DNA from: Heptranchias perlo
Lineage: Eukaryota
Length of the DNA stretch: 64,000 bases
Direction of reading: 5' to 3'
NCBI RefSeq assembly: GCF_035084215.1
Contig: NC_090363.1
Span: 5,952,001 to 6,016,000, forward strand
Position 1 is the first letter of the stretch; the number at the start of each line of letters is the position of its first letter. The notes beneath the pieces were generated by a model that saw only the letters and a program-made list of their open reading frames with translations, did not search any database and was not told the origin of the DNA. A program made the translations under genes and the position numbers. This document shows, in pieces, positions 3,306 to 48,344 of this stretch.

Positions 3306-3363
3306 ATGCTGTTCATTCAAGAGTTTACTTTAATGCAGCTGATTCTCTTTGCAACATGCATGG
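3306..3363 (+). CDS. Gene 1 exon 1, signal peptide MLFIQEFTLMQLILFATCM
   Basis: ATG in AAAATG context, hydrophobic leader, phase-1 donor G|GTGAGT. Confidence 0.8.
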
Positions 3364-6300
3364 GTGAGTTAATTGATTTTTGCCCGTTACCGATAGCGTC
3401 GACAATCCATAGGATAATGTGAATTTAAATTGTATCTTTTGCAGAAACTAGACTTTTTAAAAAAAAATTAAAACATTTCTAGCTTCTAATCGATAATTTT
3501 TATTATTTGAGATAACCACAAAAACGCTAACGGGCACCAATTGTTGATATGTTTTTTCCACAATTTACTGAAGATTGTCGCAATAACGATAAAATAGCGG
3601 TGTCACTGTGCTTGGTGATTGGTCCACGCTCCTCTGAGCAGATTTACGCTATGTCCTAGGCTTAAGCACCTATGCGGCAGAATTTCCGCAAGATTCCCCG
3701 TAACTTTGGCGGAAGATCGGCTCTTTTTTATAAAACAGTTGTTGAATGAAACAGGATAATGGATATATGAATGTCATATCAATCAAAATCACAGGTAATC
3801 GATCTGCCACCGCATTTTATCAGTTCAACCCTTGATTTATGCGGCTTTCCTAAATTTCTCCCTGCTGATTGATTGCTCAAGTTGCCTTCAGTAATGGAGG
3901 CAGCGAGATGGAGCAACACTACGGCGCGTTAACCTGCCTTTCCCTTTCAGACCCTGGCTGAGTTGCTGTGTGTTTACAGCAGGCTCTGGTTTACATATTT
4001 CTATTATTCGCTATTTCCTTTTTATCTCTGCATTGATATAATGTGAAATGCTAACGCCAATACTGATGGAAATGTCAATCAGCGTTAGTGAGGTGTGGAG
4101 TTCAGTGATGATCGGGTTTAGAGTTAAACGTTTCACTTTTCAGCAGATGGGAAGGTGAATTTCAGCGTTTACCAGTTCCCTCCCGTTATAACTGCACAAG
4201 AGGGGGAGTCGGTGACACTGAACTGTGCCATGGATTCTGAACGAAATCCACATCTGATCGGTACAGCTACATGGACACGGGGTGACCCGAATGGGTACGA
4301 ACTGGACAATAGTCCATTTTATAAACGTCGGCTGAATAAATCGGACAGCGATTCATTTATCAAGAACAGAATATTCATTAAAATCTCCGACTTGATTGAG
4401 AAAGACACAGACACATATTTCTGCAGCATACGTTTAATGGGAGAAGAAGCACGAAGCGGGAATGGGACCAAACTGGAAGTGAAACGTAAGTGACAACTTA
4501 AAATAATCGTTTATAAGGCACGTGCTCTAATTTTACAGACGTATACGATTCACACAAACCATAATGATCTTTGGTTCAATTTCCGAGCAGTGATAAGTTA
4601 GTTGATCTCACTACAATTTGCCCCAGCAATCTGGCCCCAGATATGGGGAAATCATCTAGAGTAGCTCCTCCTGGCCCCTTCTCAAATCTTCTCTCCTGTT
4701 AAGTGTTTATATTTCTGTGGACGTCTGTGGGGAGCGGGTGAAATTGGACATGGGCGGGGACGCAAAGCGGGCGGAATCGCATCTGCCGCCCGTTTTGCAA
4801 CGCGCCCGATATTCAATGCTGTTGAAGTCAATATGGGGCGCAGTGTGTAACAGGCGTCCGATGCGATACCGCCTGTGTTGCGTCCCCCTCCCGCCTATGT
4901 ACAAGATGTCTACCTGGCTAAACTGGATTGTGACGCCGCTTAGAGTCAAAAAGCCGATTTCACCATCTGGCTTCAACAATCGATTGCCATTTGAATGATG
5001 TATTGGGATCTACCGGTGACGCCAGAACCCATGAAGAGTCATTGCTTTGGGGAGAACAGAGCAGAAATTCAATAGAGGTGGAGGGAGGCTTCTTGACATT
5101 GCCCTTACTTTCACTGGAGGAGCAATCATTTTACTTCTATTTTAATATTTCGGTTATTTCTTTTTTTACAATCATGCTATTTGTCTTAATGCAAACAAAA
5201 TCGTTTTTCCTCCGCATTTTCAGATTTAGCTATAAAAATACTGACTTCAACTTCTTATTTCAGGCAGAATACAGGGAGAAAATAGCGAGAGCAGTAACCT
5301 GGAACCTTTCCTTGGAGGTGCCCTGGCGATCCTGGTTATAACAGTCATGATTCTTATATTTCGAATAATCTGGCAAAACAAAGGTCCGTAATCTTTACAA
5401 AACACGCTGGTAACAATTTAAATATTACACTTCAGCTATAGTGGGGAAGAATTGTTCTGGTCGCTACGAGTAGCAATACAGTTCATGCTTTCGTGGAGCT
5501 AGTCGGTATTTCTAGTGAAATGTGAAACACGTTTATTATGAACAATTATTTTAGCACACCCTTAGGATTTCACTAGAAATAATAATCCAAGGAACTATCC
5601 ATAATCCATTATGATGTCGCTACACATAGTGACCAGAATAACTCCGCATCCCATCCATAATTTCGATTGGCATTACTCCTGGTTTCATTTTGCTGGCCAT
5701 TATGAGCACTTCCCTTATTTTGCTAGAAACACCTAACAGAGGAAACCTTCACCGGCACATTTAGGATATTGAACATATATAGAGAACAGAGCAATTCCAT
5801 CGCTGCAGATAGCAGTTGGTGAATTACTGGAGACTTACTGTTTACTGGAATCATTGCACATGTATAACATCTCATCATCCAATGGTCCTTACTTGTGTAC
5901 CGACTAGCTCCACGAAAGCATGAACTATATTGCTACTCGTGGCGACCAGAACAATTCTTCCCCACTATAGCTGAAGTGTAACATCTAAATTGTCGATGGT
6001 CAATTTTACAGCATTTTTATAAGTAACAATATAATGGAAGTAATTATCTTAAGACTATTATATTAATGCCTATCTTCTTTCCCTTTCAGTTATCTTGAGG
6101 CTGAAAAGGTACTGGAAATGTTAAATCCGATAGATTTGATGATTGTTGAGAACGTAATGCGCATAATTTTAAATTCTAACATCATCTCTCTTATTACAGA
6201 AATCATAGAGAAACCAATCCAATATACGGTAAGGGAGCTTTAATTGCATTTACTTGACGTATTTTACATTGATTATTACTGCTGCTTAATTGACAAAAAC

Positions 6301-8387
6301 TAAATATGAAATATATTTACAAATTATTTTATTCAAAATCACTTCATCTCCAGTCTATTCATAAATCTATGTGTACACGTGTGCATGTGTGTGTGTGTGT
6401 GTGCGTGTGCATATGTGTGTATGCATGTGTGTGTTGCATTGTGTAATTCTGACATTTTCTATCATTGACTCCCCTCTCATATTCACAGAAACAGTCGATC
6501 CACAGCCAACGACACAAGTAAGACCACTGGATGTTGAGATGTTATACATGTGCAATGATTCCAGTGAACAGTAAGTCTCCAGTAATTCACCAACTGCTAT
6601 CTGCAGCGATGGAATTGCTCTGTTCTCTATATATGTTCAATATCATAAATGACTAGCTCCACGAAAGCCTTGAATATACTCAACAACTGGGGCAGAGAAT
6701 TCCAAAGATTCACAACCCTCTAAGTGAAGAAATTCCTCCTCATCTCAGTTTTAAATGGCCGACTTCTTATCCTGTGACTTTGCCCCCTAGTTCTAGACTC
6801 TCCAGCCAGAGGAAACAACCTCTCCGCATCTACCCTGTCAAGCCCCCTCAGAATCTTATATGCTTCAATGAGGTCACCTCTCATTCTTCTAAATTCCAGA
6901 GAGTATAGACCCATTCTACTCAACCTCTCATCATAGGACAATCCTCTCATCCCAGGAATTAATCTAGTCCAAATTCATCAAGTCCAAGTGGTGCAAACGT
7001 GATTGTACGTGGTACACAACTGGCTTAGCCAACCATTCCCAGATCTGGCTTGCCACATTAATCGCTTACAGGCTTTGCGTTACTCTGCAGAAACCATCCA
7101 CTACTCCAGGACCATCCTGGAGGGTAAGGATAACTCTAGGCTCCTTGTCTCTACTACTTTAAACAACTTTCTTCTCCACCTCCACTCTCACCTCAAGTGC
7201 GAGGAACTCAAGCATTTTCCTCTCAAAGACAGAGACCATCTGTTCAGCCGCCTTGCTGCTTCTGTCTTCCTCTTGTCCACAAAGCCAAATTTCCCCCAGT
7301 CATTGCCCTGAACCCTCGCCTCTCACCAGTTTCCCCCCTTTCCACCCAACTCCTCCAAATTCATCTCATCCATGAGACCTACTTCCTGTTTTCTTGATCA
7401 CCACTAAACTCCTGATCATCCGACTTCCCTTCCTCGCACTCATTTTAGCCAATATTGTAAATGGTTAAATTTATACAGGTACTATCGCCCTACCTTTCAA
7501 ACCGGCCGTCATTATCCCTTCTCAAGATCCTTGAACTCTCTGCCATATCTAGGTAATGTCCCATCTTCAAACTTTCCTTTACTCTCCAAGATCCTCAACG
7601 TGCTTTTGCCTCCCAGATCTGTATCAATCTCCCCTCCAAGAGGGTTTCTACCCCTCTCACAACACTGTAACAACCCTAACCAAAGTCATGCGTGGCATTC
7701 TCTGCTACTGAGAATTTGGTGTGTTATCCATCTTCATGCTCATTGACCTCTCGGTAAACTTTGACATCAATCACGTGATCCTCCTCCAATGCCTCTTCTC
7801 TGTTGTTCAACTCCGTGGTCATCCACTTTGCTTGGCTCTACTATTACGCATCCAGTAACAAGAGCATCACCAGCAATGGCATCGCTTTCCACCCATGCCA
7901 TTAGCTCGGGAGTCTCCAAAGGATACAGCCTTTACTCACTTGTCTATATATTTCCCCTAGTTGGCTCATCGAATCCTTGCATTCAGTATCCGTATGTATG
8001 CCAATTACAGATTTACTTATCCACTACCTATCTCGACTCCTCCACTGACTTTGTGCTGTCAGCCCGTTGCTCCGACATCTAGACTTGATTGAGCCATAAC
8101 TTGTTCTTTGACTCTGGGTCCATTTATTTTTTAATTACACATCGCTGAAGCGCCTTGGGACGTTTTTCTACGGCGCTATAAACATGAAAATTGGTTTTGT
8201 TGTATTTATATGCATTGGGAATTTAAGTCAATTTTAATCTGCTTGCAATAATTATCAGGCACATTCCAATCATGGCAGTGGTGAGTCGGTTTCCGTGCAT
8301 TATGTCCAAGTGAATACAAAGCAAGAAGGGAAGACGAGAAGAAAGAACAAGGAGGTACATCATGTGGAGTACGCCACCATCAACTGA
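3306..8387 (+). CDS. Gene 1: NKp30/NCR3-like single VJ-type Ig-domain inhibitory receptor with two ITIMs (7 coding exons, ~241 aa)
   Basis: Exons 3306-3363, 4144(or 4147)-4485, 5264-5383, 6090-6108, 6200-6228, 6489-6517 and 8259-8387 are all bounded by GT-AG. Intron phases 1,1,1,2,1,0 join into one open frame: leader, V domain, TM (PFLGGALAILVITVMILIFRIIW) and a tail containing IYETV, VHYVQV and VEYATI, then TGA. Confidence 0.88.
4144..4485 (+). CDS. Gene 1 exon 2, VJ-type Ig V domain (NKp30-like)
   Basis: B-strand Cys (VTLNC), C-strand Trp (IGTATWTRG), D-x-x-x-Y-F-C and J-like GNGTKLEV all lie in one exon. Acceptor TTTTCAG/CAG, donor C|GTAAGT. Resembles human NKp30 motifs IGSVTWFR and GNGTRLVV. 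Confidence 0.93.
5264..5383 (+). CDS. Gene 1 exon 3, stalk + transmembrane
   Basis: CTTATTTCAG acceptor; reads RIQGENSESSNLEPFLGGALAILVITVMILIFRIIWQNK; phase 1 to phase 1. Confidence 0.85.
6090..6517 (+). CDS. Gene 1 cytoplasmic mini-exons 4-6 (6090-6108, 6200-6228, 6489-6517)
   Basis: 19, 29 and 29 nt exons, each with a pyrimidine-tract AG and a GTA donor. They read VILRLKR/NHRETNPIY/ETVDPQPTTQ, and their phases match gene 2. Confidence 0.78.
6660..6970 (-). mobile_element. CR1-type LINE 3' fragment
   Basis: Reads LSYDERLSRMGLYSLEFRRMRGDLIEAYKIL, the CR1 ORF2 C-terminus. Confidence 0.85.
7060..8205 (+). mobile_element. Degraded L2 LINE fragment
   Basis: Decayed RT-like sequence ending in an L2-type tail. 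Confidence 0.55.
8259..8387 (+). CDS. Gene 1 last coding exon with two ITIMs
   Basis: Phase-0 acceptor ATTATCAG; reads AHSNHGSGESVSVHYVQVNTKQEGKTRRKNKEVHHVEYATIN*. AATAAA at ~8669. Confidence 0.85.
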   Translation, partial: AHSNHGSGESVSVHYVQVNTKQEGKTRRKNKEVHHVEYATIN

Positions 8388-11297
8388 AGCAGTGTGAAGA
8401 AACCAGAAAGACCTCAAAAATCCTGATCCTACGTATTCCTATCCCTGTCACTGTGAGAACAGGAACAATTTTAAACAGTATCCAGCACATCGACCGCCAT
8501 GTTCTTTATTACTCCAGCAATAATGTTGTAACATGTTAGCTATGAATCTATGTAAATCTGCAGTTGTTCCTAATTTCCCAGTTGTACAATATTCTGCCGT
8601 TTCAATTAATCACCCTGTGGAAGATGTGTAGCAAATCTTTGGAAATTGACTCTTCCTTCCCATTTCCAAATAAATATGTCTTTCCAGCTTGACAAACTGA
8701 ACAAGGTAGGAGAAGAATTCCTCTGGGTCATTGTGTGTAGTGACTGTGGAAATGCATCAGTGAAAATTCACTTCCGTTGGTATTTCTGGTGAAATCATAA
8801 AAGCATTCTTAAAAATGTATTCGCTGTTTTCCTAGAAATAGGTATCAAGAAATCTTCCCGGTGTGTTTGCATTATCAATAACAGATGGTGACCAGAGAAA
8901 ATCTTCTCCCAGGGTGACTATATACTACTTACTATTAACTAGCTTAAAATTTCTTATGAATAATAAAACTTAATCTTCTTAATTCTGCATGTCAGATTTA
9001 CGATCGTTTTACCCCAAGTGTTTGTCACAAATATTTCGATTTTGCACTTAATAAATTCTCAGATTCAACATCACCAGTCACCAGTAAGTGGACCTAGGGT
9101 CCCCTACAATTTGGAGTTCACCATTTGCTGTCCAGTATCTAGCTAAACGATATTGTGGCCAGGAATTGTAACATAGAACTCGTATTGTGTGTACTGGCTA
9201 CTGTAATATCATAGATACCATCATGTGTATTCTGCTGTCCTTACAGAAGGAAGTCTGAGAAACAAATTAATAAGACGAGACACAATGGGAAACAATCAGG
9301 TTAGTTTATTTTGGAACAACAGGATACAGTTTCCACAGTAATCTGTGTCGCTTCCCAATGCTCCTTCATTCACGAAAAATAACAAAGGTATGACTCCACT
9401 GAAGCTCTAGGTGAAAGCCCACTTTCAGGCAAGTTGTTCCCAAGTTACCTGGCCCTGTAGTCCTGTCTTTAGCTGCTTGAATTCACCCTACCTATCTGGT
9501 GTGTGAAGGAGAGAGTGAGAGCGGAGGGGGAGACGGGGAGAGAGAGATCTTCAAGACAAGGGATACTAGTTACCTCTGTATCACAGCAGCCCCCACCCCC
9601 AATCTCAACCCACCCTGACACCAGAATTAGTTTCAAATTGAACTAGTATTGTTGAACTGCCAAAAGCTTTCCCCTTTTATTAATTTAATTTTGAGCAGAC
9701 TGGACTCTGTTTTTTGCATATTAAAATTTGATTATCCGCTGTTCCTAAATGGACACCATTCAGGTAAATTGTCACCCTTCTCGGATGCTTGAAAAGCAAC
9801 TCGTACCAATAGATTGTAAACAAGTGATATCCAGACTGAGTGGTTTTGAAGCAGAGACAGGAATGCTCACAATTGCTTTCGGAGGAAACTTCCATGGCTG
9901 CACACACCCCACCTCCTTCCCCCCATACCGCTCCACGCACACTGTCTTGGAATCTGAGAAAGTACATTAAATGGGTTAAAACCGAGCCTTACTCCACCCT
10001 GTGGCCATATTGTAAATAAAAGGCGTGGATATTCCTCTGATAAAAAAAAACTCGAGGGTCTTACCATAACGATTCTAAAGTGGGTTTATAAATGAGTGCT
10101 AAATATCCACTTTAATTAAAACTTCAATCTTACAATTTAACAATTCACGATATTTTTACATTCAGCACCACAACTTAGCAAGAGTTGTTGCTCAGTGAAT
10201 ATTCAAGCAGAGCTGAAGATCTAATGATAAAAGCAAAACAATAAAATCATGCAGCCTGTAGAAGTAAAAAGCACGGAGCCTGTATCAGCTCAACTGCAAC
10301 AGACTCACGCGGTAAATGCAAAGCTTTGCAGAATTGAAAAGAAGCAATCGGCTTGGCTCTCAAATCTCACAGACAGAAAATAGACATAGTCCTGTAACTG
10401 TGCAATCCTCCATCTTCCCCTTACTGTTGATTTTGTTTTGTCCATTTAACAGTGGCGCAATGCTTCATGTGAACTCATAAACAAATATCATGATACAATA
10501 AAAGTCACAGGTATGATTTTCCCAATCAAATGTATATGAATTCAGCCAAATAAATGTCATCTTATATAATGTTACCCAGCCCTGTCTCATGCACATGACT
10601 TTTCTAATGATAGTCTGACGTAGGACACTCCACCCTGGACATGTATCCTTATCGGCATTTACAATTAGTGTTTTCAATAATTTTAACAAATTGTTGCCAA
10701 GTGTTTTGTTTACTTTCATTATTACTTCCTGTTTTTCTCTGAACATATCTCTCAGTCACCAGGTCACGCAGCGCGGGACACACGGTATAAAAATAACCTT
10801 GCTCCTCATCAAAAGAACTGTTTACATGATTCTGTGTTCCAATAAGACAATTTATTGCTTGATGCGGATGGATTCTATACGTGAATGCTGGTCATCTCAT
10901 GCTCGAAATACGTTCCTGTAATTCAGGTGATGGCTGGACTGTGGGCCGGTTGAATTGCCAGCTATTAGTGTGCTCATAAAACCAAGAGTCATTTTCAGGA
11001 TTGCTCAGTCCAACATTTGGCGTATTGTTCCGAGTCAGGCTGTACTAGGAGCAAAAATTCCGGTCAGTTAATCACACTGTCGACAACCGACAATACAGCA
11101 GCATTCTTGCAAGTACAGTATAACATTTTAAGAACGTGTTTGTTTAAAAGTAAACTTACCAATGACAAATTAACGTGTTTTTCTTCATGTGTTTTACATC
11201 TAGTGAAAGCTGTAATCTTCGCAATTCTTTCAAATGGCTTATTAGAATAAATCTAATTGTAGTGTTAGCAAATTATCGACACGTGTGACCTTGACAG

Positions 11298-12150
11298 TTT
11301 TTTTTTTATTCGTTCATGGGATGTGGGCGTCGCTGGCGAGGCCGGCATTTATTGCCCATCCCTAATTGCCCTTGAGAAGGTGGTGGTGAGCCGCCTTCTT
11401 GAACCGCTGCAGTCCGTGTGGTGAAGGTTCTCCCACAGTTAGGAAGGGAGTTCCAGGATTTTGATCCAGCGACGATGAAGGAACGGCGATATATTTCCAA
11501 GTCGGGATGCTGTGTGACTTGGAGGGGAACGTGCAGGTGATGGTGTTCCCATGTGCCTGCTGCTCTTGTCCTTCTCGGTGATAGAGGTCACGGGTTTGGG
11601 AGGTGCTGACGAAGAAGCCTTGGCGAGTTGCTACAGTGCATCCTGTGGATGGTACACACTGCAGCCACTCTGCGCCGGTGTTGAAGGGAGTGAATGTTTA
11701 GGGTGGTGAATGGGGTGCCATTCAAGCGGGCTGCTTTATCCTGGATGGTGTTGAGCTTCTTAAGTGTTGTTGGAGCTGCACTCATCCAGGCAAGTGGAGA
11801 GTATTCCATCACACTCCTGACCTGTGCCTTGTAGATGGTGGAAAAGCTTTGGGGAGTCAGGACGTGAGTTACTTGCTGCAGAATACCCAGCCTCTGACCT
11901 GCTCTTGTAGCCACAGTATTTATATGGCTGGTCCAGTTAAGTTTCTGGTCAATGGTGACCCCCAGGATATTGATGGTGGGGGATTTGGCGATGGTAATGC
12001 CGTTGAATGTCAAGGGGAGGTGGTCAGACTCTCCCTTGTGGGAGATGGTCATTGCCTGGCACTTGTCTGGCGCGAATGTTACTTGCCACTTATCAGCCCA
12101 AGACTGGATGTTGTCCAGGTCTTGCTGCATGCGGGCTCGGACTGCTTCAT
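11298..12150 (-). mobile_element. CR1/L2-group LINE, 5'-truncated 3' end
   Basis: Reads QQDLDNIQSWADKWQVTF...MEYSPLAW, with a poly-A tail; highly similar to 13350-14780. Confidence 0.88.
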
Positions 12151-12577
12151 AAAATAAACGGAATAACTTTGTTATATACTTCCGTTTTAAAATCGCATTT
12201 TAGCCCATATTTCTTATAAGTTCAACGTTAGCGGTGATTCCTTACCTTACACGGTTGCTATTATAAAATAAACAATTTTTGAATTATTTTAAAAGAGGTT
12301 GAGGCAGATCTAGACTCCCCAGAGAATCGGGTTAACAATTTGGTTCGGGAACATATAATCCATATCGAATCTACCGTGTAAATGTAATTTGGCCACTTGT
12401 TGTGAAGGTCTTCATTTAGAACGAGCTTCAGATTGGAGCTCACTGCATAGCAAGTTCTTGAGCCGGCCACTAGATGGAGCCCGTTGCAGAGCTGAAGAAA
12501 ACTACAAGACAGATCCAGTTCACTCATCCACAGGCAGCGTTTAGGAAAAGGTCATGAGCAAATTAAAGGGAAGGGGT

Positions 12578-25600: not shown

Positions 25601-28600
25601 TGTGTCCACGCCCAAGTCCGATATCAACCGCTAAAAAGAGAAGACAAGGGCTCTTTTTCAATTTGTCACCAAGGCATGAAAATGGCAAAGAGGATTATCG
25701 GCCCATTATAAAACCCACCAGATTTTCATCCCATTGAAATCAATGGAAATGAAAATCTGCAAGTGAAGAGGAAAATTTACCGCAGGGAGATAGATGGAGA
25801 AGCTTACAATGCGATAAGTCTTCATTTCAATGCAGGTAGAATGCAGTGACATGGGAAAAACGAGCAGGGTGGTGCATTTGCAATTTAAGAGGAAGGAAGG
25901 GGGAATGTAATGAAAGTAACACACGAACTTACCTCTGAAGAGCAATACAAGCTGTAAAAAAGGGCAAAACACACAATCATGAAATGATTATATCTGAATG
26001 CATAATGATGATTTCGTTTGCAATTTCATACCCTGATAATTACCATCTATGGTGTTTCTATGGAAGTATAATTTGCCAAAAATGTGTGCCATAAAACAGC
26101 ATAATCAGTAATAAACATGAACATGGCATATACTGGCAAACATGCCATTGTCCTAAAGAGGTACCAATCACGGTTCTTCATACTTTCCAATTTCAGGCTA
26201 AAACATTTGTTATTAATAACCCATTCCACCCATCCACCTCCTATATGGACATCTTACAACCACCCCACCCCCACCCGCCCCACAGCTGATTGGATCCTAG
26301 ATGAACAAGGAAACCACAGGGCCCCTACTGCCAATCTAATCGCCCACATGGGCAATGTGTTGCCCAAACCTCGCTGACACCTCGGGGTATTTTGCTCTGT
26401 GCTCGCCGCCTCCACCCTCGTTTTTTTTCTGCCCCTTAAAGTGCCAATCGCAATCGCCTACCCAAAAGTCCAAACAAACTCTGATCCACTTTTTCTGCTC
26501 GATATGAGCCTCTCAACAGGTTGCCCCCGACAACCGACAGAGCTACCACAATGAACATAACTATAATATACATAGTGTAGGCATCTGAAAGCATCACCCA
26601 ATATATTGCAAACAATTTTACAACACCAAGTTATAGTCCAGCAATTTTATTTTAAATTCACAAGCTTTCGGAGGCTTCCTCCTTCCTCAGGTAAATGTTC
26701 AGGAGCTCCTTGAAGCCTACGCATCCTGAACATTTACCTGAGGAAGGAGGAAGCCTCCGAAAGCTTGTGAATTTAAAATAAAATTGCTGGACTATAACTT
26801 GGTGTTGTAAAATTGTTTACAATTGTCAACCCCAGTCCATCACCGGCATCTCCACACCAATATATTGCGACCAAAGAAAATAGGCAAACCTGGCTCAATT
26901 CAATGAATAAAAATTATAAACTGAAGTTCATAACCCATTCCCTCAGTAATCAACCCTTTTTAATTTCATTGCCACTACCTAAAATTGGCAATGGATATCA
27001 AATGGGATTGGGAATGATCGACCTGAACTGGTGAACATGTCAATGCTAGTAATCAATTTGATTTATTCATTCTTGGGATGTGGGCGTTGCTGGCAAGCCT
27101 GGCATTTGTTGATCGTCCCTAGTTGCCGTTGAGAAGGTGGAGATGAGCCTTCTCTGTGAGCCACTGCAATCCTTGTGGGGAAGGTACTCCCACAATGGTG
27201 TTAGGCAGGTAGGAAGTTCCTGCATTTTGACCCAGCCATGATGAAGGAACAGCGATCCATGTCCAAGTCTGGACGGTGTGTGACTTGTAGGAGAACTTGG
27301 AGGTGATGGTGATCCCACGCACCTGCTGACCTTGTCCTTCTAGGTTGCGGGTTTGGGAGGAGTTGCCCAAGACGCCTTGGCAAGTTGCTGCAGTGCATCC
27401 TGTAGATAGTACACACTGCAGCCACGGTGAGCTGGTGGAGGGGGGAGTGGATACAATTGAACACGACTTTTTCAAGGTCATTTGGGTCATTCTGTTGAGG
27501 TTTGGCAAGCAATGTAAAGGTATTGGAGGGTGAAATGGCGCGGGGTATAAAACCAGCGTTGCATCCGATCCCATCAGTTTCCCAACGGATGGGTTAGCAT
27601 AAAATTACCCCCCAGAGTTCAGGACACTACTAAGGTTTAAAGGGGGGGGGGTAAATAAATAAATAAAGGTTATAAAAGTCTGGAGATTGCAGATGGATAG
27701 GAAGACTGAATGAGGTGGAGTCCATTGGTTTTTAAGTCCTCGGAAACAAGATGAGTTGGAGAAGGACAGGACAGCAAATATCTTCATTTGAAAACAATGG
27801 GGATATCAGGAGGAGGAAAGCCATGCATTTAAACCTTAACAGAGACAATAGACCAATTGCAATAGTAGTAGCAATAATAATAGATAAAATATATAAAAAT
27901 ACCTTTATTTCGTTGGACGAGACGCACGGACACTATAATTAATGAAATGCAAAGCAGTGCTATCACTCCAGCCGCCACTCCAATGAATCTGATGCTAATG
28001 GAGCTGCAAGTTTTTCCTGTTTGAGAAGCACCTGATATGATAATCGGAAGAAAAGTCAGACAAGCATTGGTGCCTCAGCAAACGAAGACCTACTCTTTCT
28101 GTGTACATGCCATTAAAATAAAGGTGGCTGTTTTATAATAATGGAGAGGGATTAGTAAGTAAGGAGCAATGGTCTTTATTGGTGTATTTACGCCGATTTA
28201 CTACAGAGCTGGAGAGCGATTGAAAAGATGGTTGGGTGGAAAATTAGTCTTAGGCGGTAGAGCAAAGCAGGCGGTATCGAATCGACCGCCCGTTATAGGC
28301 CTTGCTCGATATTCAGTCCCATTCACTTCAATGGGACACTGAATATCGGACGGTGCTTATAATGGGCGGCTGATTCGATGAGGCCTGAGACGAATTTCCA
28401 GCCCAGTGGGAGAAACATAAGGGGGTAATTTTTCTATTCCTACACCTGCCGCTTTTAGATTACTTGGGCACGGGAAATAAAGGAAAACTCGGAGGGGATC
28501 CCAGGCCATTAAGGAAGCCCGTCCGATACGCCGTACATTTAAATCAATGGATGGGAAATCAGGCCGGTCTCCCTTAGGGACTTACGTTCCTTCCAGTTTG

Positions 28601-31286
28601 ATTATCCTGTTTTGATGGATCCAAGCTACCCAATAGCCCTAGGCACAGGAACAGGATCGCCTGTCCCTGCTCTGTCCCCCTGTGTAGCTACATCCGAAAT
28701 GGGTTTCTGAAGATTTCCTTAGATTGGCATTTCTAGCGAAATGGTAAACTGAGGGAGGGTGGGGGAGCTTTGCTCAGTGCTGCTGCACTGAAATCTGAAC
28801 ACCTTTATCATATCACTGCACTGAGACCACAGTCTCTCCGGCTTTTTTTTCCCCAAACGTTAGGATTTTATAGATAGAGCCATCTTTTACCACTGAAGGG
28901 TGAAATACGAAAAGGGAGAGGAATTGAAAGTGAGCTTCCTCTTCGTGTATCTGTGACAGGGCACACAGACACACTCACACAAACACACACACATAGGGAC
29001 ACACACAGACACGTACACGCACAGACACACACTGTCACACAGACACAAAGGCACACACATGAAGAGATACACACACAGAGACAACAACAACTTGCACACA
29101 TATAGCAGCTTTAACGTAGTAAAACGACCCAAGGCGCTTCACGGGTGTGCTATCAAACTAAATTTGACACCGAGCCACATAAGGAGATATTAGGACAGGT
29201 GATCAAAGAGTTAGGTCTTAAAGCAGAAGGGTGAAGTAGAGAGGTTTAGGGAGGGAATTCCAGACCTTAGGGCCTAGACGGCTGAAGGCACGGCCGCCAA
29301 TGGTAGAGCAGCAGGGCACACACACAGACACACACGGGAATGCTCAATCAAAATTAATCCAATGTTCTTACGCATCACGGTAACGATCGTCCCTTGACCC
29401 TTTGTCTTTCTGTCCATTACATCCAGTACGCAATAATACGTCCCAGAATCACATTCTGTAAGGTCCTTGATCCGCAGAGATAGCTTCAATATTTGCTTGT
29501 TTTTGGCGTCTCTTTGGATTACATTTACTCTTTCGCTGTACATTGATATGATTTTTGATATGTGTATGTCAAATTTTAGCCACTCATAGACTTTAGGCCC
29601 AACGAAATCGATGGTACAATTAATAGTCACATTCTGACCTTCAACGAGCGCCACTGAAAGAGGTGTCTGCTGTACATGGAGATTATTTGAGTAAACTCCT
29701 GTTACAAATAAAACAGAATAAAGCTTTCAGTGTCATAATTCGTTACTCTTCCGTGACACTTCCATATACTAATTGACCTTATCAAGATTTTTTTTTATTT
29801 AACTCGTCTCTTCCTTTCATTTTTTTTCTTCTCCTGAAGGTACTAAGTCAAACTGGAGTGGCACCAGCACCTCTCCCTCTCCTGGCACCACGGCCGTCCT
29901 TCATGTTTGGTGCCGGACTACTGGTTTTTCTAAACTTTTCTGTAAGGGGGGTCCTGAAAATAGAAATGTACACCTTGGACGCAGCCGTTATAACTTCTAA
30001 GTTAAAATTCGCGTTGGGCGGTAATGCAAACAGACGGCATCACATCAGCCGCCCGTTACACTCCCCGCCGATACTAAGCTCCAATGACTTCAATGGAGGC
30101 CCATGCGTTATGCTCGATTTGCACCAGCGTTCAGGATTCTACCTTAGTGTCAGCGAGCCAAAGGAAAGCGGTGCTCTCCATGGAAAGGTCGATGCAAAAA
30201 TAGCGTAGGACCAATGGAACTCATGTCAAGAAAAATGCAACAATCTGAGGACATGCGGACAGAAATGGATACTAAGGAGCTTTTTCCATGGATACTAAGG
30301 AGCTTTTTCCCTTCGTTGAGGGTTCTATAACAAGGGGACATAGATTCAAGGTAAAAGGCGGGAGGTTTAGAGGGGATTTGAGAAGGAACTTTTTCACCCA
30401 GAGGGTGGTTGGAGTCTGGAACTCACTGCCTGAAAGGGTTGTGGAGGCAGGAACCCTCACAACATTCAAGAAGCATTTGGATGAGCACTTGAAATGCCAT
30501 AGCATACAAGGCTACGGACCAAATGCTGGAATATGGGATTAGAGTAGACAGGGCTGATGGCCGGCGCGGACACGATGGGCCGAAGGGCCTCTATCCGTGC
30601 TGTATAACTCTATGACTCTATGAGAAATGGAATGAACTCAGGGACTCCCTGGAATCTCCGGCTAAACGCGCTGGAGTTCGGGAACCCTAGTTTGAATATT
30701 TTGTTTGATTTCATTCTCAGCGTGTGGGTGTCTCCGGCTATTGCCCGTCCTTGATTGCCCCTTGAGAAGGTGGTGGAACCTCTTCTTGAACCTATCTTTG
30801 TCCTTGGACAGTGTGGGCAAACGGCACCTGAGTTTTACAATCCAGTCTCAGCTAATTCCTCCCTTATATACAGGCCCGTGTTTCCTAGGGAATAAAGTGA
30901 TCGCTATCCCAATTTTCCCTCGCTTGGTTCAGAGAGGAAAAGTCCAACGGTAGCACCCATCCTGCACCGGCTCGGGCCCACAAACGTACTGGACTGTTGA
31001 CCAAACCTGGGACTTTCCTGCTCTGTAATACTCTGCAATACATTTCTCCAACTAACCTTTCAATGGGGCGTTAGGACTCCATTAATAAGTTAACATGTCC
31101 CCGCTCTTCTAAAGTTTATATAGGCGATTGTAAACCTTTATGTAGCTCAGTTCCGAATACTCTATCCATCACATATCTGTTTCCATCCAATTAACAGAAA
31201 TTTTTGAATATAAACCTAGACTTACCACTGGCGAAGAGACACAACATTAGAATAAAGGCGGGAGTAGAACAAAAATCTATTGTCAT
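19508..31286 (-). CDS. Gene 2: NCR3-like single VJ-type Ig-domain receptor, paralog of gene 1, lacking a canonical ITIM (7 coding exons, ~243 aa)
   Basis: Exons 31286-31226, 29698-29372, 28031-27903, 25951-25933, 25310-25276, 22751-22717 and 19633-19508 are all GT-AG. Phases 1,1,1,2,1,0 are identical to gene 1, including a 19-nt exon 4, and give a continuous ORF ending ...DNAEYVHFGQPQATLP*. Confidence 0.86.
19788..19863. repeat. (GATA)n microsatellite, imperfect
   Basis: Direct reading. Confidence 0.85.
20205..21085 (+). mobile_element. CR1-type LINE 3' fragment
   Basis: Reads [15 protein letters not shown], with the (TTCTATGA)n tail. Confidence 0.85.
22717..25951 (-). CDS. Gene 2 cytoplasmic mini-exons 4-6 (25951-25933, 25310-25276, 22751-22717)
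   Basis: 19, 35 and 35 nt exons with strong acceptors and GTAAGT/GTAATT/GTAAGC donors. They read ACIALQR/QFVAFITEKST/ESVPSNQKGMHK. Confidence 0.78.
23610..23960 (-). mobile_element. CR1 3' end
   Basis: Same 3' UTR family as 20205-21085. Further copies at ~24665-24985, 33655-33920, 51050-51280 and 52020-52290. Confidence 0.7.
26610..26856. mobile_element. Penelope-derived inverted-repeat insertion in gene 2 intron 3
   Basis: Near-perfect inverted arms of ~95 bp; 12-bp TSD CCAATATATTGC (26598-26609 and 26857-26868). Confidence 0.8.
26732..26772 (+). ncRNA. Minimal type I hammerhead ribozyme motif (mirror copy on - strand at 26656-26696)
   Basis: AUUUAC-CUGAGGA-A-GGAGG(AAG)CCUCC-GAAA-GCUU-GUGAAU: stem I, conserved core, stem II and a palindromic stem III. 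Confidence 0.65.
27060..27480 (-). mobile_element. Diverged LINE 3' end (family of 13350-14780)
   Basis: Sequence similarity to 11298-11700. Confidence 0.7.
27903..28031 (-). CDS. Gene 2 exon 3, stalk + transmembrane
   Basis: Reads RASQTGKTCSSISIRFIGVAAGVIALLCISLIIVSVRLVQRNK. It ends ..N-K-G|GT in the same way as the gene 1 TM exon. Confidence 0.85.
29372..29698 (-). CDS. Gene 2 exon 2, VJ-type Ig V domain
   Basis: Reads LHVQQTP...EGQNVTINC...YEWLK...LRIKDLTECDSGTYYC...GQGTIVTV. Acceptor TTTGTAACAG, donor C|GTAAGA. Confidence 0.92.
30285..30625 (+). mobile_element. CR1 3' fragment
   Basis: Reads TRGHRFKVKGGRFRGDLRRNFFTQRVVGVWNSLP, with the (ACTCTATG)n tail. Confidence 0.85.
31226..31286 (-). 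CDS. Gene 2 exon 1, signal peptide MTIDFCSTPAFILMLCLFAS
   Basis: AAAATG start, hydrophobic core, G|GTAAGT donor. Confidence 0.82.
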
Positions 31287-34689: not shown

Positions 34690-37600
34690 CTATTCGGGTC
34701 CTGTGTGGATTTTGACTCCAGACCTCTTGAAGTGTCATAGCTTCAAGCCAAAGCTCAAGGAAACCATTGGTGCTCACGACTTACTGCCCTCCCCACTGAC
34801 TAATCAGTACCTCTCCATGTTGAACATCGCCTTGGGGGAACTCTGAGATGAGCAACGGCACAGAATGCACTCTGGGTGGGGGATTTTAATGTACACCACC
34901 AAGATTAGTTTGGTAATGCCACCACTGACCAAGCTGGCTTAGTCCTGAGGGATGTCACTCTTGACTGGGCCTGTATCAGGTAGAGATGGAACCGACACAA
35001 GGAAGTAACCTGCTTGGTCTCATCCTCACCCACCTATCTGTTTCAGACACATCTGCCCATGATAGTACTGATAGAGATGTAGAGATGTCCATGAAACAAT
35101 CCTTGTGAATACAAAGCCTTATCTTTACAATGAGGACATTCTCCATCATGTCGTGTGGCACTGATACCGTGCTAAGTGGCACAGACTAAGGACAAATCTA
35201 ACAGCCCAAAATGAGCAACCAGGAGGCACAATGAGTAATCAGCAGGAGCATAATTGTATACCCAGAACATCCTTCCTTCCTTCATTGTCATCAAGCCAGA
35301 AGACGACTCCTGCTTCAATATGGAGTGCACAAGGATGTGCCAGCATCAGCATCAGGTGGACCTTAGAAAGACCTATGAACCTAGTGAAGAGATAACTGCA
35401 TGCTAGGTATCTCTTCACCAGCAGTAGACTAAAGACAGAGTAAAGCAGTCCCATAATCTACAGATCAGAACATAGCTGTGTAGCCCTGCCACATCCAGTC
35501 TAGAATAGAGTTGGACAACCAGTCAACTAATAGGAGGAGGATGGCCTCATTAACATTACCATACCCAACCATGGCGGAGCCAGCAAGCTGCTGCAAGAGA
35601 CAAGCCTGCTGTGTTTCAACCAAAAGTGCCAGGTGCACCCTTCCAAAGTCCTCACTAGCATAGGTACCAGTGACCATCTAATTCGGTTCACTCCACATGA
35701 CAATAGAGAATGGCAGATTGCACTATGAACAACAAAGGCTATGGGTCCTGACAATATCCCAACTGTCTACTCGAGCTAGCTGCTACGCTGGCCAAGCTGC
35801 TGCAGTACAGCTATGAACCAATAAAGTGGAAGATTGCCTAAGCGTGTCCTCTTCACAAAACAGGAAAGTCTAACCCAGCCAGTTCAGTCCAAGCCCAATC
35901 TTCAGCAAGTAATGGACGGATGTCATCAATAATACCATCAAGCAGCACCTACTCAGGAATAACCTGCTTGCCAACACTAAGTTCAGGGTCATGATATTTT
36001 GGGAGTGTGGCGGGGGAAATCCTGTTGGGAAACCCGGAAGCAGAAGAGGAAGGAAGAAGACGTGAATAGGTAAGTGTTAGATGGGGGGTGTCATCAGAGG
36101 GGGGGGGTCGGGAGTCACTGAGGGGGGGGCTCAGTCGTTGGGTGTCACCGGGGGCGGTGAGGGGTCAGTTACTGAAGGGTCACTGGGGGGTCAGTTATGG
36201 AGGTCATTGGGGGGTCAGTCATCAAAGGGCTCAGTGATCGGAGAGGCGGCTCAGGGGGGCTCAGCCATCGGAGGGCTCAGTCATCAGAGGGGAGGTCATC
36301 ACAGGGGTCGGAGATCATGGGAGGTTGGAGATTGTGGGGGGGTCGGAGATCGTTGGGGGGGTCTATCGTGTTTGTAGGGTCATTACAGGTTGGCTTGTTG
36401 GACCTGGGGGAAGCACTCCTGCTTCTCTGGGACCACAAGCCGAGCTATAAAGACACTTACCTGCAGTTTTGGGCCTTTCGCCTCCTCTCACGTGGCGTGA
36501 AGCAGAAGGCCCGGGAATCCCGGCCCCCAGGGGTTAAAAACAAAAAAATCTGTCAAAATGGAGGCCCGCCACCTCCTTGAAAGTTTTTTAATGACCGACC
36601 TACCTCCTAAGAGCGGGTTGGTCACCTGCCCCTTGTCCCACCTCTGCGGAAACCGGAAATGGGCAGGGGGGAGGTGGGTTGGAGGCGGGTTTTAGACTTT
36701 TAAAATTTTTACAGCCCCATCGCCCCAAACCCACCGATTTTTCCCCATTTAAAATCATGCCCAGGTTTCACCAGAACGATTCAACTTTAGACCTTATTAT
36801 AGCCTTAATTCAGACATGGATTCAATGGCTGAATGTCGTCAAAGAGATGAGAGTAGCTTCCCTGGATATCAAGGCAGCACATAACCCAGCCTGGCACCAA
36901 GGAACCCTAGCAAAACTGAAGTCAATGGGAGTCAAAAGGAAAATGCTCCAGTGGCTGGAGTCAGACCTGATGCAAAGGAAGATGTCATGGTGGTTGGAGG
37001 CCGCTCATTGCAGCCCCAGTATCACTGCAGAAATTCCTCAGGCAAATGTCCTTGGCCCAACTATCTTCAGTTGTTTCATCAATGACTTATTCACCATCAT
37101 TCGCTGATGATTCCAGTGTTGAGCTGCATTCAAAACTCCTCCAATTATGAAGCAGCTCATGCTAGCCTACATTAGTAAACAATTTTACAACACCAAGTTA
37201 TGGTCCAACAATTTTATTTTAAAATTCACAAGCTTTCGGAGGCTTCCTCCTTCCTCAGGTGAATGTCAAGAAATCCTCGAACCTCTCGCATTTATAAATC
37301 ACAGAACAACATTAGGACCAATGTAGCAACCGGGCTTGGGCTGACAATATCATCCAGGACAGGGCAATTCACTTGATGGGTGCCCGTGCCATTGGACTCA
37401 GCATCCACCCCCTTCCACTAGGTCACACTGTGGCGGCAGTATGTATGATTGACAGGATGCATTGCACAGGTTCACCGGGAGCACCAATACATCCAAGTCT
37501 CACATCGATCTGACTCGGACTTAGATCTCTGTTCTTTCATCATCAAACCAATATCTGGAATTCCCTATCTACTCACCAAGGCTTCTTCGACAGCACCTCC

Positions 37601-39473: not shown

Positions 39474-39737
39474 ATTATAAAATATTCACAATTGCTATTT
39501 ATAAAATATTCACAATTGCTATTTATAAAATATTCACAAATGCTATTTATAAAATATTCACAATTGCTATTTATAAAATATTCACAATTGCTATTTATAA
39601 AATATTCACAAATGCTATTTATAAAATATTGACAATTGCTATTTATAAAATATTCACAAATGCTATTGATAAAATATTCACAATTGCTATTTATAAAATA
39701 TTTACAATTCGTATTTATAAAATATTCACAATTGCTA
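39474..39737. repeat. 24-bp AT-rich minisatellite, ~11 copies
   Basis: Unit TATAAAATATTCACAATTGCTATT. Confidence 0.92.
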
Positions 39738-41039
39738 TGACTTTAAACTGCAAACAAGTCCGAGCCCAAGTAAGGGATGTTTATATTTTCCCCGCCTCCC
39801 ATATTTGCAGTTGCCAGTAAAATTGCAATTTTCTCAGCCAGTGGCTCGGTGCACCCCCGGTGTGACCTTACCTCAATGAGAACAGAATGGTTTCTGGTTT
39901 GATCCCGATCAGGACTGATTTAGCTGATGTGAATCGAGCGATAGGGACCAGTAGCTTTTAGAGGGCGCCAATTTGTTTTCACCTCCCTTCGGCTGGGAGG
40001 AGAAGGAAAATTCACCGGCGGTCCTGTCCCCTGATCACTATCCAATGATGTCCCGCTGGAAAGTGAGTGTACACGAGGGGGCTCAGCTCTCCATGGGCTC
40101 AAATAGCCCGCCCAACACACACCGACTTAGGCATGCAAATACCCAATGCCAATTGGACGAGTTACTTTCGCGTCGCCAGTGGAACTGTACCTCGACTACA
40201 GTCAGCAACATACAGAGAACATTTTAAGACCACCTTACCAGTTTCAGAGCCCGCTTGTGACCAGTTGATAGTAAGATAATTGCACGTTGACATGACAGTG
40301 GTGCGCTCTCTCACACAGCGAAACTTCCATCACAGTGCTGCCAGCAAGGCCACATCCTGTTTATGTTATTTTCTATAACTTTAACCATCGCCATAAATTT
40401 ACTGGTCAGTTTGAAAACATATTTCTTTAGACTTGTGGGTTTATTTTCGCTTTCTTGTAATAACTTGTGTTGTTGTGTCCTTTCCTAAATGCGACATTTC
40501 GCAACTAATAACTGGCCTCATTTTCAATTGGATTCGGCCTTGCGTTTGAATTCAACCAATGGTTCGAATTATTTTTTTAATATAATTATTAGTGGACCAG
40601 ACATCATTTTTTTGCATTGGTTGTTGTGTGTCCATGAACAGGATGCACGTGTTAACCAATATGTCAAATCCGATTTGGATTAATTTTCTGCGTTTGTTTT
40701 TTGGTATATGGGCAATTGATGTTTTGTGTAAGGAGAGATTGGTGTACCTATGCAGGTTTGACCTTTATTTTTAAATAATTGGGTATGTGGTGCATGGGGT
40801 TTTGTGTGTGTGTGTGTGTAGACATGTTTGAGTTTGCACTCCAAGGGGTGGTTTGATTTTTTGTGTAAGGAGTGATTTTTGTATGTATGCGAGTTTGATT
40901 TTTTAATAATAAATGGGGTTTTCTTTTTTTGTGTGTAGACAGGTTTGAGTTTGCTGTCCATAGGGTGCTTTGATTATTTTGTGTGTGGAGGGTTTGATGT
41001 TTTGTGGGTGGTGTTTGTGTTTTTTTATGTATCCCTCCT

Positions 41040-41690
41040 CATCCTTCTCGACCTTTTGATATCATCGACCACACCATCCTTCTCCAACGCCTCGCCTCCG
41101 TTGTCCTGCTGAGTGGGACTGCACTCACCTGGTTCCACTCTTACCTATCTAGTTGTAGCCAGAGAGTTTCCTGCAATGGGTTCTCTTCCTGCCCACGCAC
41201 CTTTACCTCTGGAGCCCCCCAAGGATCTATCCTTGGCCCCCTCCTGTTTCTCGTCTACATGCTGCCCCTCAGTGACATCATCCAAAGACATGACATCGGG
41301 TTCCACATTTGCACTAAGAACACCCAGCTCTACCTCACCACCACCTCTCTCGACCCTCCACTGTCTCTGATTTGTCACACTGCTTGTCCGAATCCAGTCC
41401 TGGATGAGCCGAAATTTCCTCCAAGTGAACACCGGAAAGTCTTCAATCCCCCGCCATAAACTCCATTCCCTCGCCACCGATTCCATCCCCCACCCTGACC
41501 TCTATCTGAGGCAGAACCAGATTATTCACAACCTCAGCCTACTATTTGACCCTGAGCTGAGCTTCCAACCACTTATCCGCTCCATCGCATAGGCTGCCTA
41601 ATTCCACTCCCACAATATCACCCATCTCCGCCCCTGCGCCTCGAGATATTTTCCTACATTAAAGGTGCTATATAAACTCAAGTTATTCTG
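41040..41690 (+). mobile_element. L2 LINE RT fragment
   Basis: Reads FDIIDHTILLQRL...WFHSYLS...GAPQGSILGPLLF. Confidence 0.85.
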
Positions 41691-41704
41691 CATATGGGTA
41701 TGAT

Positions 41705-43625
41705 TTTTTGTTTGATGGGGTTTGATTTTTTAGTTTGATGGGGTTTGATTTTTTTTGTGATTGATTGGGTTTGATTTTTTTGGTTGCGATTGGGTTTGAT
41801 TTTTTTGGGTTTGGGTTTGATTTTTTGGTGTGATTGGGTTTGATTTTTTTGGGTGTGATTGGGTTTGATTTTTTTGGTTGTGATTGGGTTTGATTTTTTG
41901 GGTGTGATTTGGGTTTGATTTTTTGGTTGTGATTGGGTTTGATTTTTTTGGTTGCGATTAGGTTTGATTTTTTTGGGTGTGATTGGGTTTGATTTTTTTG
42001 GGTGTGATTGGGTTTGATTTTTTTGGGTGTGATTGGGTTTGATTTTTTGTTTGTGATTGGGTTTGATTTTTTGGGTGTGATTGGGTTTGATTTTTTGGGT
42101 TTGGGTTTGATTTTTTGGGTGTGATTGGGTTTGATTTTTTGGGTTTGGGTTTGATTTTTTTGGTTGTGATTTGGGTTTGATTTTTTGGTTGTGATTGTGT
42201 TTGATTTTTTGGTTGTGATTGGGTTTGATTTTTTGGGTGTGATTGGGTTTGATTTTTTTGGTTCAGATTGGGTTTGATTTTTTGGTTGCGATTGAGTTTG
42301 ATTTTTTGGTTGTGATTGGGTTTGATTTTTTGGTTGTGATTGGGTTTGATTTTTTGGGTTTGGGTTTGATTTTTTTGGGGTGTGATTGGGTTTGATTTTT
42401 TGGGTTTGGATTTGATTTTTTGGGTGTGATTGGGTTTGATTTTTTGGTTGTGATTGGGTTTGATTTTTTGGTTGTGATTGGGTTTGATTTTTTGGGTTTG
42501 GGTTTGATTTTTTTGGGGTGTGATTGGGTTTGATTTTTTGGTTGTGATTGGTTTTGATTTTTTGGGTGTGATTGGGTTTGATTTTTTTGGTTGTGTTTGG
42601 GTTTGATTTTTTTGGTTGTGTTTGGGTTTGATTTTTTGGGTTTGGGTTTGATTTTTTGGGTGTGATTGGGTTTGATTTTTTTGGTTGTGTTTGGGTTTGA
42701 TTTTTTGGGTTTGGGTTTGATTTTTTGGGTGTGATTGGGTTTGATTTTTTTGGTTGTGTTTGGGTTTGATTTTTTGGGTTTGGGTTTGATTTTTTGGGTG
42801 TGATTGGGTTTGATTTTTTGGTTGTGATTGGGTTTGATTTTTTGGTTGTGATTGGGTTTGATTTTTTGGGTTTGGGTTTGATTTTTTTGGGGTGTGATTG
42901 GGTTTGATTTTTTGGTTGTGATTGGTTTTGATTTTTTGGGTGTGATTGGGTTTGATTTTTTTGGTTGTGTTTGGGTTTGATTTTTTTGGTTGTGTTTGGG
43001 TTTGATTTTTTGGGTTTGGGTTTGATTTTTTGGGTGTGATTGGGTTTGATTTTTTTGGTTGTGTTTGGGTTTGATTTTTTGGGTTTGGGTTTGATTTTTT
43101 GGGTGTGATTGGGTTTGATTTTTTTGGTTGTGTTTGGGTTTGATTTTTTGGGTTTGGGTTTGATTTTTTGGGTGTGATTGGGTTTGATTTTTTTGGTTGT
43201 GTTTGGGTTTGATTTTTTTGGTTTGGGTTTGATTTTTTGGGTGTGATTGGGTTTGATTTTTTTGGTTGTGTTTGGGTTTGATTTTTTGGGTTTGGGTTTG
43301 ATTTTTTGGTGTGATTGGGTTTGATTTTTTGGGTGTGATTGGGTTTGATTTTTTGGTTGTGATTGGGTTTGATTTTTTAGTTGTGATTGGGTTTGATTTT
43401 TTGGTTGTGATTGGGTTTGATTTTTTAATTGTGATTGGGTTTGATTTTTTGGGTTTGGGTTTGATTTTTTGGGTTTGGGTTTGATTTTTTGGGTGTGATT
43501 GGGTTTGATTTTTTTGGGTGTGATTGGGTTTGATTTTTTTTGGGTGTGATTGGGTTTGATTTTTTTGGGTGTGATTGGGTTTGATTTTTCGTGAGATTGG
43601 GTTTGATTTTTTGTGTTTGTGTTTC
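41705..43625. repeat. ~1.9 kb G/T-rich simple satellite
   Basis: Variants of TTTGATTTTTTGG(G/T)TGTGATTGGG; almost no C on the + strand. Confidence 0.95.
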
Positions 43626-47774: not shown

Positions 47775-48344
47775 AATGGCACTGTTGGCAGAAGTGCAGG
47801 GAGTTCTCCCTGTGTCCTGGCCAACGTTCCTCCCTCAGCCAGCACCACCAAAAACAGATTAACCGGTTATTTATCTGTTTGTTGGACCTTGCTGTGCAAA
47901 TATTAGCTGTGCATTTGCCTTCATACCATCAGTGACTACATTTCAAAAAGTACTTCATTAATTTCAAAGTGCACTGGAATCAGTCTGAGAATGTGAGAGG
48001 TGCTATAGAAATCCAAGTTCTTTCTTTCTTTCTTGTTAAGTTAGGCCTTGAATTACTCTGGTTCATACTCCTACACGCTATCAAAACATCCTTTACACTG
48101 CTATAATATCCGACAATCCTTGGATGTTCTCCAAGCTTCTCCCCTTGCTTTTTACTTCTTCTGAGAAATAAGGAAGAAACCTCCCCTTTAAGTATTTTCA
48201 CCTATCAGAATTAAACATTACTGCAGGCAGTTCTGACCAACTAACGTTTTCCATCAGAGATAGGCTTCCAATGATAATTGCATGAGCACTTAATTAAAGT
48301 ACTTAATTTTGTTTGAGCACAAAATCTAGCCTGACACTTCAATG

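Follow-up and report, generated by a model that had tools for sequence, protein, structure and literature searches.

A window of 64,000 nucleotides from the sharpnose sevengill shark, Heptranchias perlo (contig NC_090363.1, positions 5,952,001 to 6,016,000 of the forward strand; positions below are counted from its first letter) holds two convergent genes, each for a receptor with a single variable (V) domain. They stand tail to tail with 11 kb between them, and their outer limits are the start codons at 3306 (+) for gene 1 and 31286 (-) for gene 2. The two are probably neighbouring members of the elasmobranch NCR3 (NKp30-like) family that belong to separate lineages, with gene 1 acting as an inhibitory receptor and gene 2 signalling through its own tail. 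On this interpretation an ancient inverted duplication would have produced both genes, each of which would have persisted since then as a one-to-one orthologue lineage of its own. Both products would be type I membrane proteins with a signal peptide, one V domain, a short stalk, a transmembrane (TM) segment and a cytoplasmic tail, the last predicted in both to be assembled from a microexon of 19 nt, a pair of small exons and a final exon in which a basic patch is followed by an E-Y motif.

The skeleton shared by the two genes can be read directly off the sequence. Over seven coding exons the intron phases are 1,1,1,2,1,0 in gene 1 and in gene 2 alike, every splice junction of both is canonical AG/GT, exon 4 has 19 nt in each, the TM exon ends in AAC AAA G/GT (gene 1) or AAT AAA G/GT (gene 2), and a basic patch ahead of the final E-Y is common to both. 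An initial annotation of this DNA had described just such a convergent seven-exon arrangement, with the same phases, the 19-nt exon 4, the N-K-G/GT end of the TM exon and the basic patch before EY, and reading the genes exon by exon bears the description out, with the NCBI models P0160 and P0174 in agreement for exons 2-7. Exons 2-7 of gene 1 are reproduced exactly by NCBI isoform X1 (P0160), and the V exon is 100% identical to two NCBI H. perlo proteins, XP_067829801 (isoform X1) and XP_067829802 (isoform X2), the latter of which NCBI names 'natural cytotoxicity triggering receptor 3-like'. Exons 2-7 of gene 2 match P0174, which NCBI calls an 'uncharacterized protein' and which lies on the 21.08-Mb contig that also holds gene 1. 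The leader exons are missing from these models, that of gene 1 from P0157 and P0160 and that of gene 2 from P0174; both have been accepted because they are similar to signal peptides of orthologues, gene 1 to those of P0162 and P0163 (among the orthologues of catshark and horn shark) and gene 2 to those of P0170, P0169 and P0153. The coding exons of gene 1 are the following.

3306-3363, + strand: exon 1, ATG and signal peptide (MLFIQEFTLMQLILFATCM), phase 1; from the sequence and orthologue leaders.
4144-4485, + strand: exon 2, V domain of the VJ type with the J-like GNGTKLEV, phase 1; Pfam V-set, E 4.7e-12.
5264-5383, + strand: exon 3, stalk without Cys and TM segment (about 5308-5373), phase 1; from the sequence and P0160.
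6090-6108, + strand: exon 4, 19-nt microexon (VILRLK), phase 2 out; from the sequence and P0160.
6200-6228, + strand: exon 5, 29 nt (RNHRETNPIY), phase 1 out; from the sequence and P0160.
6489-6517, + strand: exon 6, 29 nt (ETVDPQPTTQ), phase 0 out; from the sequence and P0160.
8259-8387, + strand: exon 7, VHYVQV, the basic patch KTRRKNK, VEYATI and the stop codon TGA at 8385-8387; from the sequence and P0160.

The tail of gene 1 carries two canonical ITIMs (tyrosine-based inhibitory motifs of immunoreceptors), VHYVQV (8295-8312) and VEYATI (8364-8381), with 23 residues from tyrosine to tyrosine, and IYETV is formed across the exon 5/6 junction; the initial annotation had listed two VxYxxV/I ITIMs at this distance together with IYETV, and all three were found. 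The tandem SH2 domains of SHP-1 and SHP-2 usually dock on just such an arrangement, two canonical ITIMs at a 23-residue spacing, and the ITIMs of gene 1, once phosphorylated, would, to judge from the motifs, recruit these phosphatases and damp activation. The catshark orthologue (P0167) has VQYAKV and VEYATI and that of horn shark (P0163) QQYAKV and AEYATI, the tyrosines being 23 residues apart in each. Since the two ITIMs and their spacing are thus kept in horn shark and catshark, an inhibitory function for gene 1 is likely. The VILRLK of its exon 4 is also kept in orthologues, as VILRLK/N, and the outer and middle parts of the gene 1 TM segment are free of charged residues.

For the V domains the V exons were searched singly, and the database proteins P0157 and P0153 served as full-length queries. 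Among solved (PDB) structures the gene 1 V domain has its four best relatives in human NKp30 chains when the single sequence is used (E 4e-9), and with a profile built from its orthologues NKp30 again supplies the top four PDB matches (E 2.4e-10), the next match being 70-fold weaker; by such comparison the V domain of gene 1 is specifically NKp30-like. The PDB sequence matches of the gene 2 V domain are generic V domains (DIP, VNAR, TCR alpha, CD79b, SIRP). NKp30 is not among its best 60 sequence matches, nor is it among the listed fold matches of its predicted model, which again are generic V domains only. B7-H6, put forward in the initial annotation as a possible B7-family ligand for both receptors, is therefore plausible as a ligand for gene 1 only, its V domain being NKp30-like and that of gene 2 not. 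The two receptors probably bind different ligands. Gene 2 is laid out as follows.

31286-31226, - strand: exon 1, ATG and signal peptide (MTIDFCSTPAFILMLCLFAS), phase 1; from the sequence and orthologue leaders.
29698-29372, - strand: exon 2, V domain of the VJ type with the J-like GQGTIVTV, phase 1; Pfam V-set, E 6e-8, and P0174.
28031-27903, - strand: exon 3, stalk with Cys136 (28008-28006), Arg142 (27990-27988) and TM segment 27987-27925; from the sequence and P0174.
25951-25933, - strand: exon 4, 19-nt microexon (ACIALQ); from the sequence and P0174.
25310-25276, - strand: exon 5, 35 nt (RQFVAFITEKST); from the sequence and P0174.
22751-22717, - strand: exon 6, 35 nt (ESVPSNQKGMHK), phase 0 out; from the sequence and P0174.
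19633-19508, - strand: exon 7, a Ser-rich stretch, the polybasic GKKKRKPKQRNK, AEYVHF (19552-19535) and the stop codon TAA at 19510-19508; from the sequence and P0174.
40293-40239, - strand: alternative first coding exon of NCBI isoform X2, P0174 (MSTCNYLTINWSQAGSET), not signal-peptide-like; NCBI model.

The cytoplasmic tail of gene 2, at 71 aa, is the better kept part of the protein, with a mean pairwise identity among orthologues of 67% versus 54% for the V domain. This tail, which is rich in lysine, contains a nearly invariant NK-ACIALQ-RQFVAYITEKS, a polybasic KKKKRKPK stretch and a conserved terminal N-A-x-Y-V-H-(F/V/I/C)-G. The Tyr of FVAYITEKS (exon 5, 25276-25310) is kept in nine orthologues and is Phe in H. 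perlo, the only shark or sawfish of the alignment with Phe at that place. AEYVHF and ISIRFIG (27999-27979, - strand), two motifs to which the initial annotation had drawn attention, are both present, and gene 2 has, as it also stated, no canonical ITIM. The Arg of the second motif, Arg142, stands at the outer TM edge, where a helix predicted by AlphaFold2 begins at residue 141 and continues through the TM segment and the juxtamembrane part. How much weight should a single Arg bear? In an alignment of eleven orthologues it is found in H. perlo only, with Val or Ile in its place in 10/10 of the others, where the residue that follows is His, Tyr, Leu or Phe. Because the tail is long, conserved and provided with a tyrosine motif, and because the Arg is not conserved, gene 2 most likely relies for its signalling on its own tail rather than on an adaptor with an ITAM (a tyrosine-based activation motif of immunoreceptors). 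The stalk Cys, present in all the aligned sharks and in skate and absent from sawfish, suggests a disulfide-linked dimer, and a juxtamembrane Cys of gene 2 may be palmitoylated.

Some findings weigh against the roles assigned here to the two genes. In horn shark the residue at -2 is non-canonical at both ITIM positions (QQYAKV, AEYATI), and for H. perlo itself NCBI models, beside the ITIM-bearing form of gene 1, an isoform without ITIMs (P0157). As for gene 2, Arg142 is placed like the adaptor-coupling Arg of human NKp30 and, by that analogy, may represent a species-specific gain of adaptor coupling; there is a small chance that the private Arg and the Tyr-to-Phe change of H. perlo together mark a lineage-specific shift.

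Are two V domains that have drifted so far apart still to be traced to one source? Gene 1 and gene 2 are 29% identical there over 112 aligned positions, and a comparison with hhalign of the profiles of the two orthologue sets gives a probability of 98.9 and E 1e-17, the alignment extending from the V domain through the TM segment into the 19-nt exon; the two genes are, on this comparison, homologous. In the V-domain phylogeny, an analysis that the initial annotation had itself suggested, a branch of 3.2 changes per site, with 100/100 support, divides the gene 1 set (horn shark, catshark and bamboo shark) from the gene 2 set (nurse, whale, zebra, white, basking and horn sharks, houndshark, two catsharks and sawfish), and each gene of the window falls inside its own orthologue set; the skate orthologue was aligned with the gene 2 set and left out of the tree. 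The old inverted duplication proposed in the initial annotation agrees with all of this: the orthologue groups are distinct and, by profile comparison, homologous. From each gene having its own orthologue lineage in other sharks, and gene 2 in sawfish and skate as well, the duplication is, as far as these lineages date it, older than the split between squalomorph and galeomorph sharks and, for gene 2, older than the shark-ray split. The orthologues of both genes are on one chromosome-scale contig in S. canicula, and likewise in H. francisci.

Membership of the NCR3 family is indicated in several ways. Each gene has, in a single V exon, an in-built J-like G-x-G-T-x-[LV]-x-V (VJ type, non-rearranging), and the window holds no other exon of this kind. 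Bamboo-shark relatives of gene 1 are named NCR3 in UniRef, and the nurse-shark (Ginglymostoma cirratum) orthologue of gene 2, P0172, was deposited as 'Natural cytotoxicity triggering receptor 3'; gene 2 is placed in the family because of this name and because it is homologous to gene 1. Nurse shark reportedly possesses eight highly divergent NCR3 subtypes linked to the major histocompatibility complex (MHC). The window shows no recognisable MHC marker gene. PMC12227049 refers to eight divergent NCR3 genes of nurse shark, MT914154-MT914161, and both PMC12227049 and PMC10450919 cite Kinlein et al. 2021 (Immunogenetics 73:333) on the shark family. P0172 most likely belongs to these eight, MT914154-61. 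Both genes of the window resemble the shark NCR3 family in having a single non-rearranging V domain of the VJ type followed by stalk, TM segment and tail; H. perlo gene 2 differs in its private Arg at the TM edge and in the change from Tyr to Phe in its tail.

With human NKp30 the likeness lies in one V domain with a J-like G-x-G-T motif, present in both shark genes; it is the closest solved relative of the gene 1 V domain, whereas that of gene 2 is not specifically NKp30-like. The shark genes have seven coding exons, against four for the human NKp30 gene. Human NKp30 has a TM Arg through which it couples to CD3zeta/FcRgamma, and a tail without signalling capacity of its own (PMC6514059). That positive TM residue, on which adaptor coupling in mammalian NKp30 depends, is absent from gene 1, and in gene 2 it is unconserved and confined to H. 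perlo; unlike the human protein, gene 1 has two ITIMs and the tail of gene 2 is long.

Where then does this leave the history of the family? In the Hexanchiformes, a basal lineage of sharks, the V domain most like that of NKp30 belongs to an ITIM-bearing, probably inhibitory receptor without the adaptor-coupling Arg, this ITIM-bearing NKp30-like design is kept in horn shark and catshark, and beside it a very divergent second member with a conserved tail of its own appears to have been kept since before the shark-ray split. To our knowledge NKp30 is the one natural-killer receptor described as traceable across jawed vertebrates, and its V domain figures in discussion of the origin of antigen receptors. 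What is added is comparative detail on the early signalling of the NCR3 family rather than a new kind of system; the family has been published and both genes had been annotated automatically. The value lies in corrected gene models, with leader exons and microexon, in a negative result on the 'activating Arg', and in two leads, a frame switch at the microexon and a possible link to LST1.

The first of these leads would have the signalling of such receptors controlled by splicing. Exon 4, and in H. perlo a second donor of exon 6 as well, would act as a frame switch that turns the ITIM tail on or off: inclusion would give the ITIM tail, and skipping a stable mRNA for a short-tailed receptor without ITIMs, so that one gene would supply both forms. 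Though this is rather unlikely to be the right account, there are observations in its favour. NCBI isoform X2 of gene 1 (P0157) uses a second exon 6 donor after 6570 in place of the one at 6517 used by P0160, which shifts the frame to an end in HIPIMAVVSRFPCIMSK with no ITIMs, while two further NCBI isoforms, one of horn shark (X4, P0165) and one of catshark (X3, P0166), leave out exon 4. Skipping of exon 4 shifts the tail into another frame that is open to a stop in the last exon, and the isoforms of the three species (P0157, P0165, P0166) share the same alternative frame and the same last-exon stop; with the new stop in the last exon nonsense-mediated decay would not be expected. Basking-shark models of gene 2 (P0018, P0154) likewise skip the microexon, and human NKp30 isoforms have alternatively spliced tails and differ in function (PMC6514059). 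However, aligners and gene predictors often overlook microexons of 19 nt, and the skipped models may for that reason be artefactual; besides, where the main frame is conserved, a likeness between species in the alternative frame is an automatic consequence.

Gene 1 also contains a young inverted duplication, whose arms 5758-5898 and 6512-6651 are reverse complements of each other (136/141 identical), and with it a nested one, 5413-5508 versus 5898-5993 (92/96 identical). The outer arm, 6512-6651, takes in the last part of exon 6 together with two donors, that of exon 6 itself and the second one, on which isoform X2 relies, and it could pair with intron 3 in the pre-mRNA, looping out exons 4-6.

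The second lead concerns LST1, a small ITIM adaptor encoded next to NCR3 in the MHC class III region of eutherians. It has a TM segment, numerous splice forms and two ITIMs to which SHP1/SHP2 bind (PMC8111073, PMC4015914), and its gene stands in mammals in the order LTB-LST1-NCR3-AIF1 (PMC1654159). It is improbable that gene 1 is related to LST1 through descent of the latter from an NKp30-like gene with ITIMs whose V exon was lost; gene 1 would then, with the same low probability, preserve the ancestral V-bearing form, the small frame-shifting exons behind the TM exon being a shared inheritance. LST1, which is treated as a eutherian novelty beside NCR3, would in that event be an inhibitory NKp30-like receptor minus its V exon. 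The likeness consists of a TM segment followed by a tail with two ITIM-type tyrosines, an NCR3 gene as neighbour and many splice forms, and the difference is that LST1 has almost no ectodomain where gene 1 has a full V domain. Pfam PF05083 (LST1) is the only family match noted for the TM-plus-tail part of gene 1 orthologues, at E 0.015 for horn shark (P0163) and 0.0077 for catshark (P0167), the matches covering profile positions 2-75 of 78. In an Atlas feature (language-model) search with the TM-plus-tail part two LST1 clusters are in the top three with a score of 0.79, and in the window gene 1 stands tail to tail with an NCR3-family gene. Yet the Pfam scores, 15.9 bits for horn shark and 16.8 bits for catshark, are below the cut-off of 22.3 bits, the tail of H. 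perlo gene 1 itself has no PF05083 match, unrelated DUF families match pieces of TM-plus-tail at similar strength, and Atlas scores under 0.9 are leads only. Among the gene 2 tails searched there was no PF05083 match either. A search of marsupials, frog and fish did not find LST1, and the gene was taken to have been gained in eutherians (PMC1654159); from sharks to eutherians the gap is accordingly very wide. The resemblance of the gene 1 orthologue tails to LST1 is thus sub-threshold, an unproven lead.

What of a true receptor pair, the central proposal of the initial annotation? There gene 1 would inhibit and gene 2 activate, the latter by engaging the Asp of CD3zeta/FcRgamma with the Arg at its TM edge, and the two would see related B7-family ligands. 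The inhibitory half of the proposal fares well, conserved tandem ITIMs giving gene 1 the potential it was credited with, but the activating half does not, the Arg being unconserved and the tail of gene 2 long and conserved. In adaptor-dependent activating receptors the tail is typically short and free of motifs and a charged TM residue is conserved, and classical paired receptors usually have near-identical ectodomains. Against this background the 71 conserved, tyrosine-bearing residues of the gene 2 tail, the absence of the Arg from every other aligned orthologue, the very long branch between V domains of 29% identity and a gene 2 V domain that is not specifically NKp30-like make the pair a highly improbable reading, notwithstanding the position of Arg142 right at the start of the predicted TM helix, the use of a TM Arg by human NKp30 for coupling to CD3zeta/FcRgamma (PMC6514059), the lack of a canonical ITIM in gene 2 and the loss in H. 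perlo of the conserved juxtamembrane Tyr (now Phe), which could fit a shift away from tail signalling. A classical pair sharing one ligand is in particular disfavoured because the ectodomains are only 29% identical. KIR, SIRP alpha/beta and PILR alpha/beta are like the genes of the window in being neighbouring homologous genes of which one, here gene 1, has canonical ITIMs of the form [SIVL]xYxx[IVL]; they are unlike them in that the ectodomains here are so dissimilar, with 3.2 changes per site on the branch between, and in that the gene without ITIMs, gene 2, carries a tail that is both long and conserved, while no charged residue of its TM segment is conserved. Gene 1 and gene 2 are, to go by their sequences, better described as family members that happen to be neighbours than as a receptor pair.

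There remain some minor observations. A candidate for exon 6 of gene 2 at 25179-25139 was ruled out by P0174 and the orthologues, the true exon being 22751-22717. The alternative first coding exon of gene 2 is situated 9 kb upstream of the signal-peptide exon, and just before the gene 2 start codon there is an upstream open reading frame (ORF) of four codons (ATG ACC AGT GAC TGA, 31310-31296, - strand). A look through the window for further genes (an AIF1-type EF-hand, more Ig exons, long ORFs) yielded only reverse-transcriptase fragments and tandem repeats. The former are LINE-like (long interspersed nuclear element) ORF fragments in both orientations at 11588-16046, 36679-37107 and 41004-41459, some of them between gene 1 and gene 2, and their Pfam RVT_1 matches are sub-threshold (E 4e-6 and 5e-5). 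Tandem arrays occupy 48344-49464 (period 33, 34 copies), 50178-50546 (period 45, 8 copies), 39475-39738 (period 24, 11 copies) and 41695-43613 (period 24/138, about 82 copies), the last of which is extremely G+T-rich on the + strand; because of these arrays the long ORFs at the four places are artefactual.

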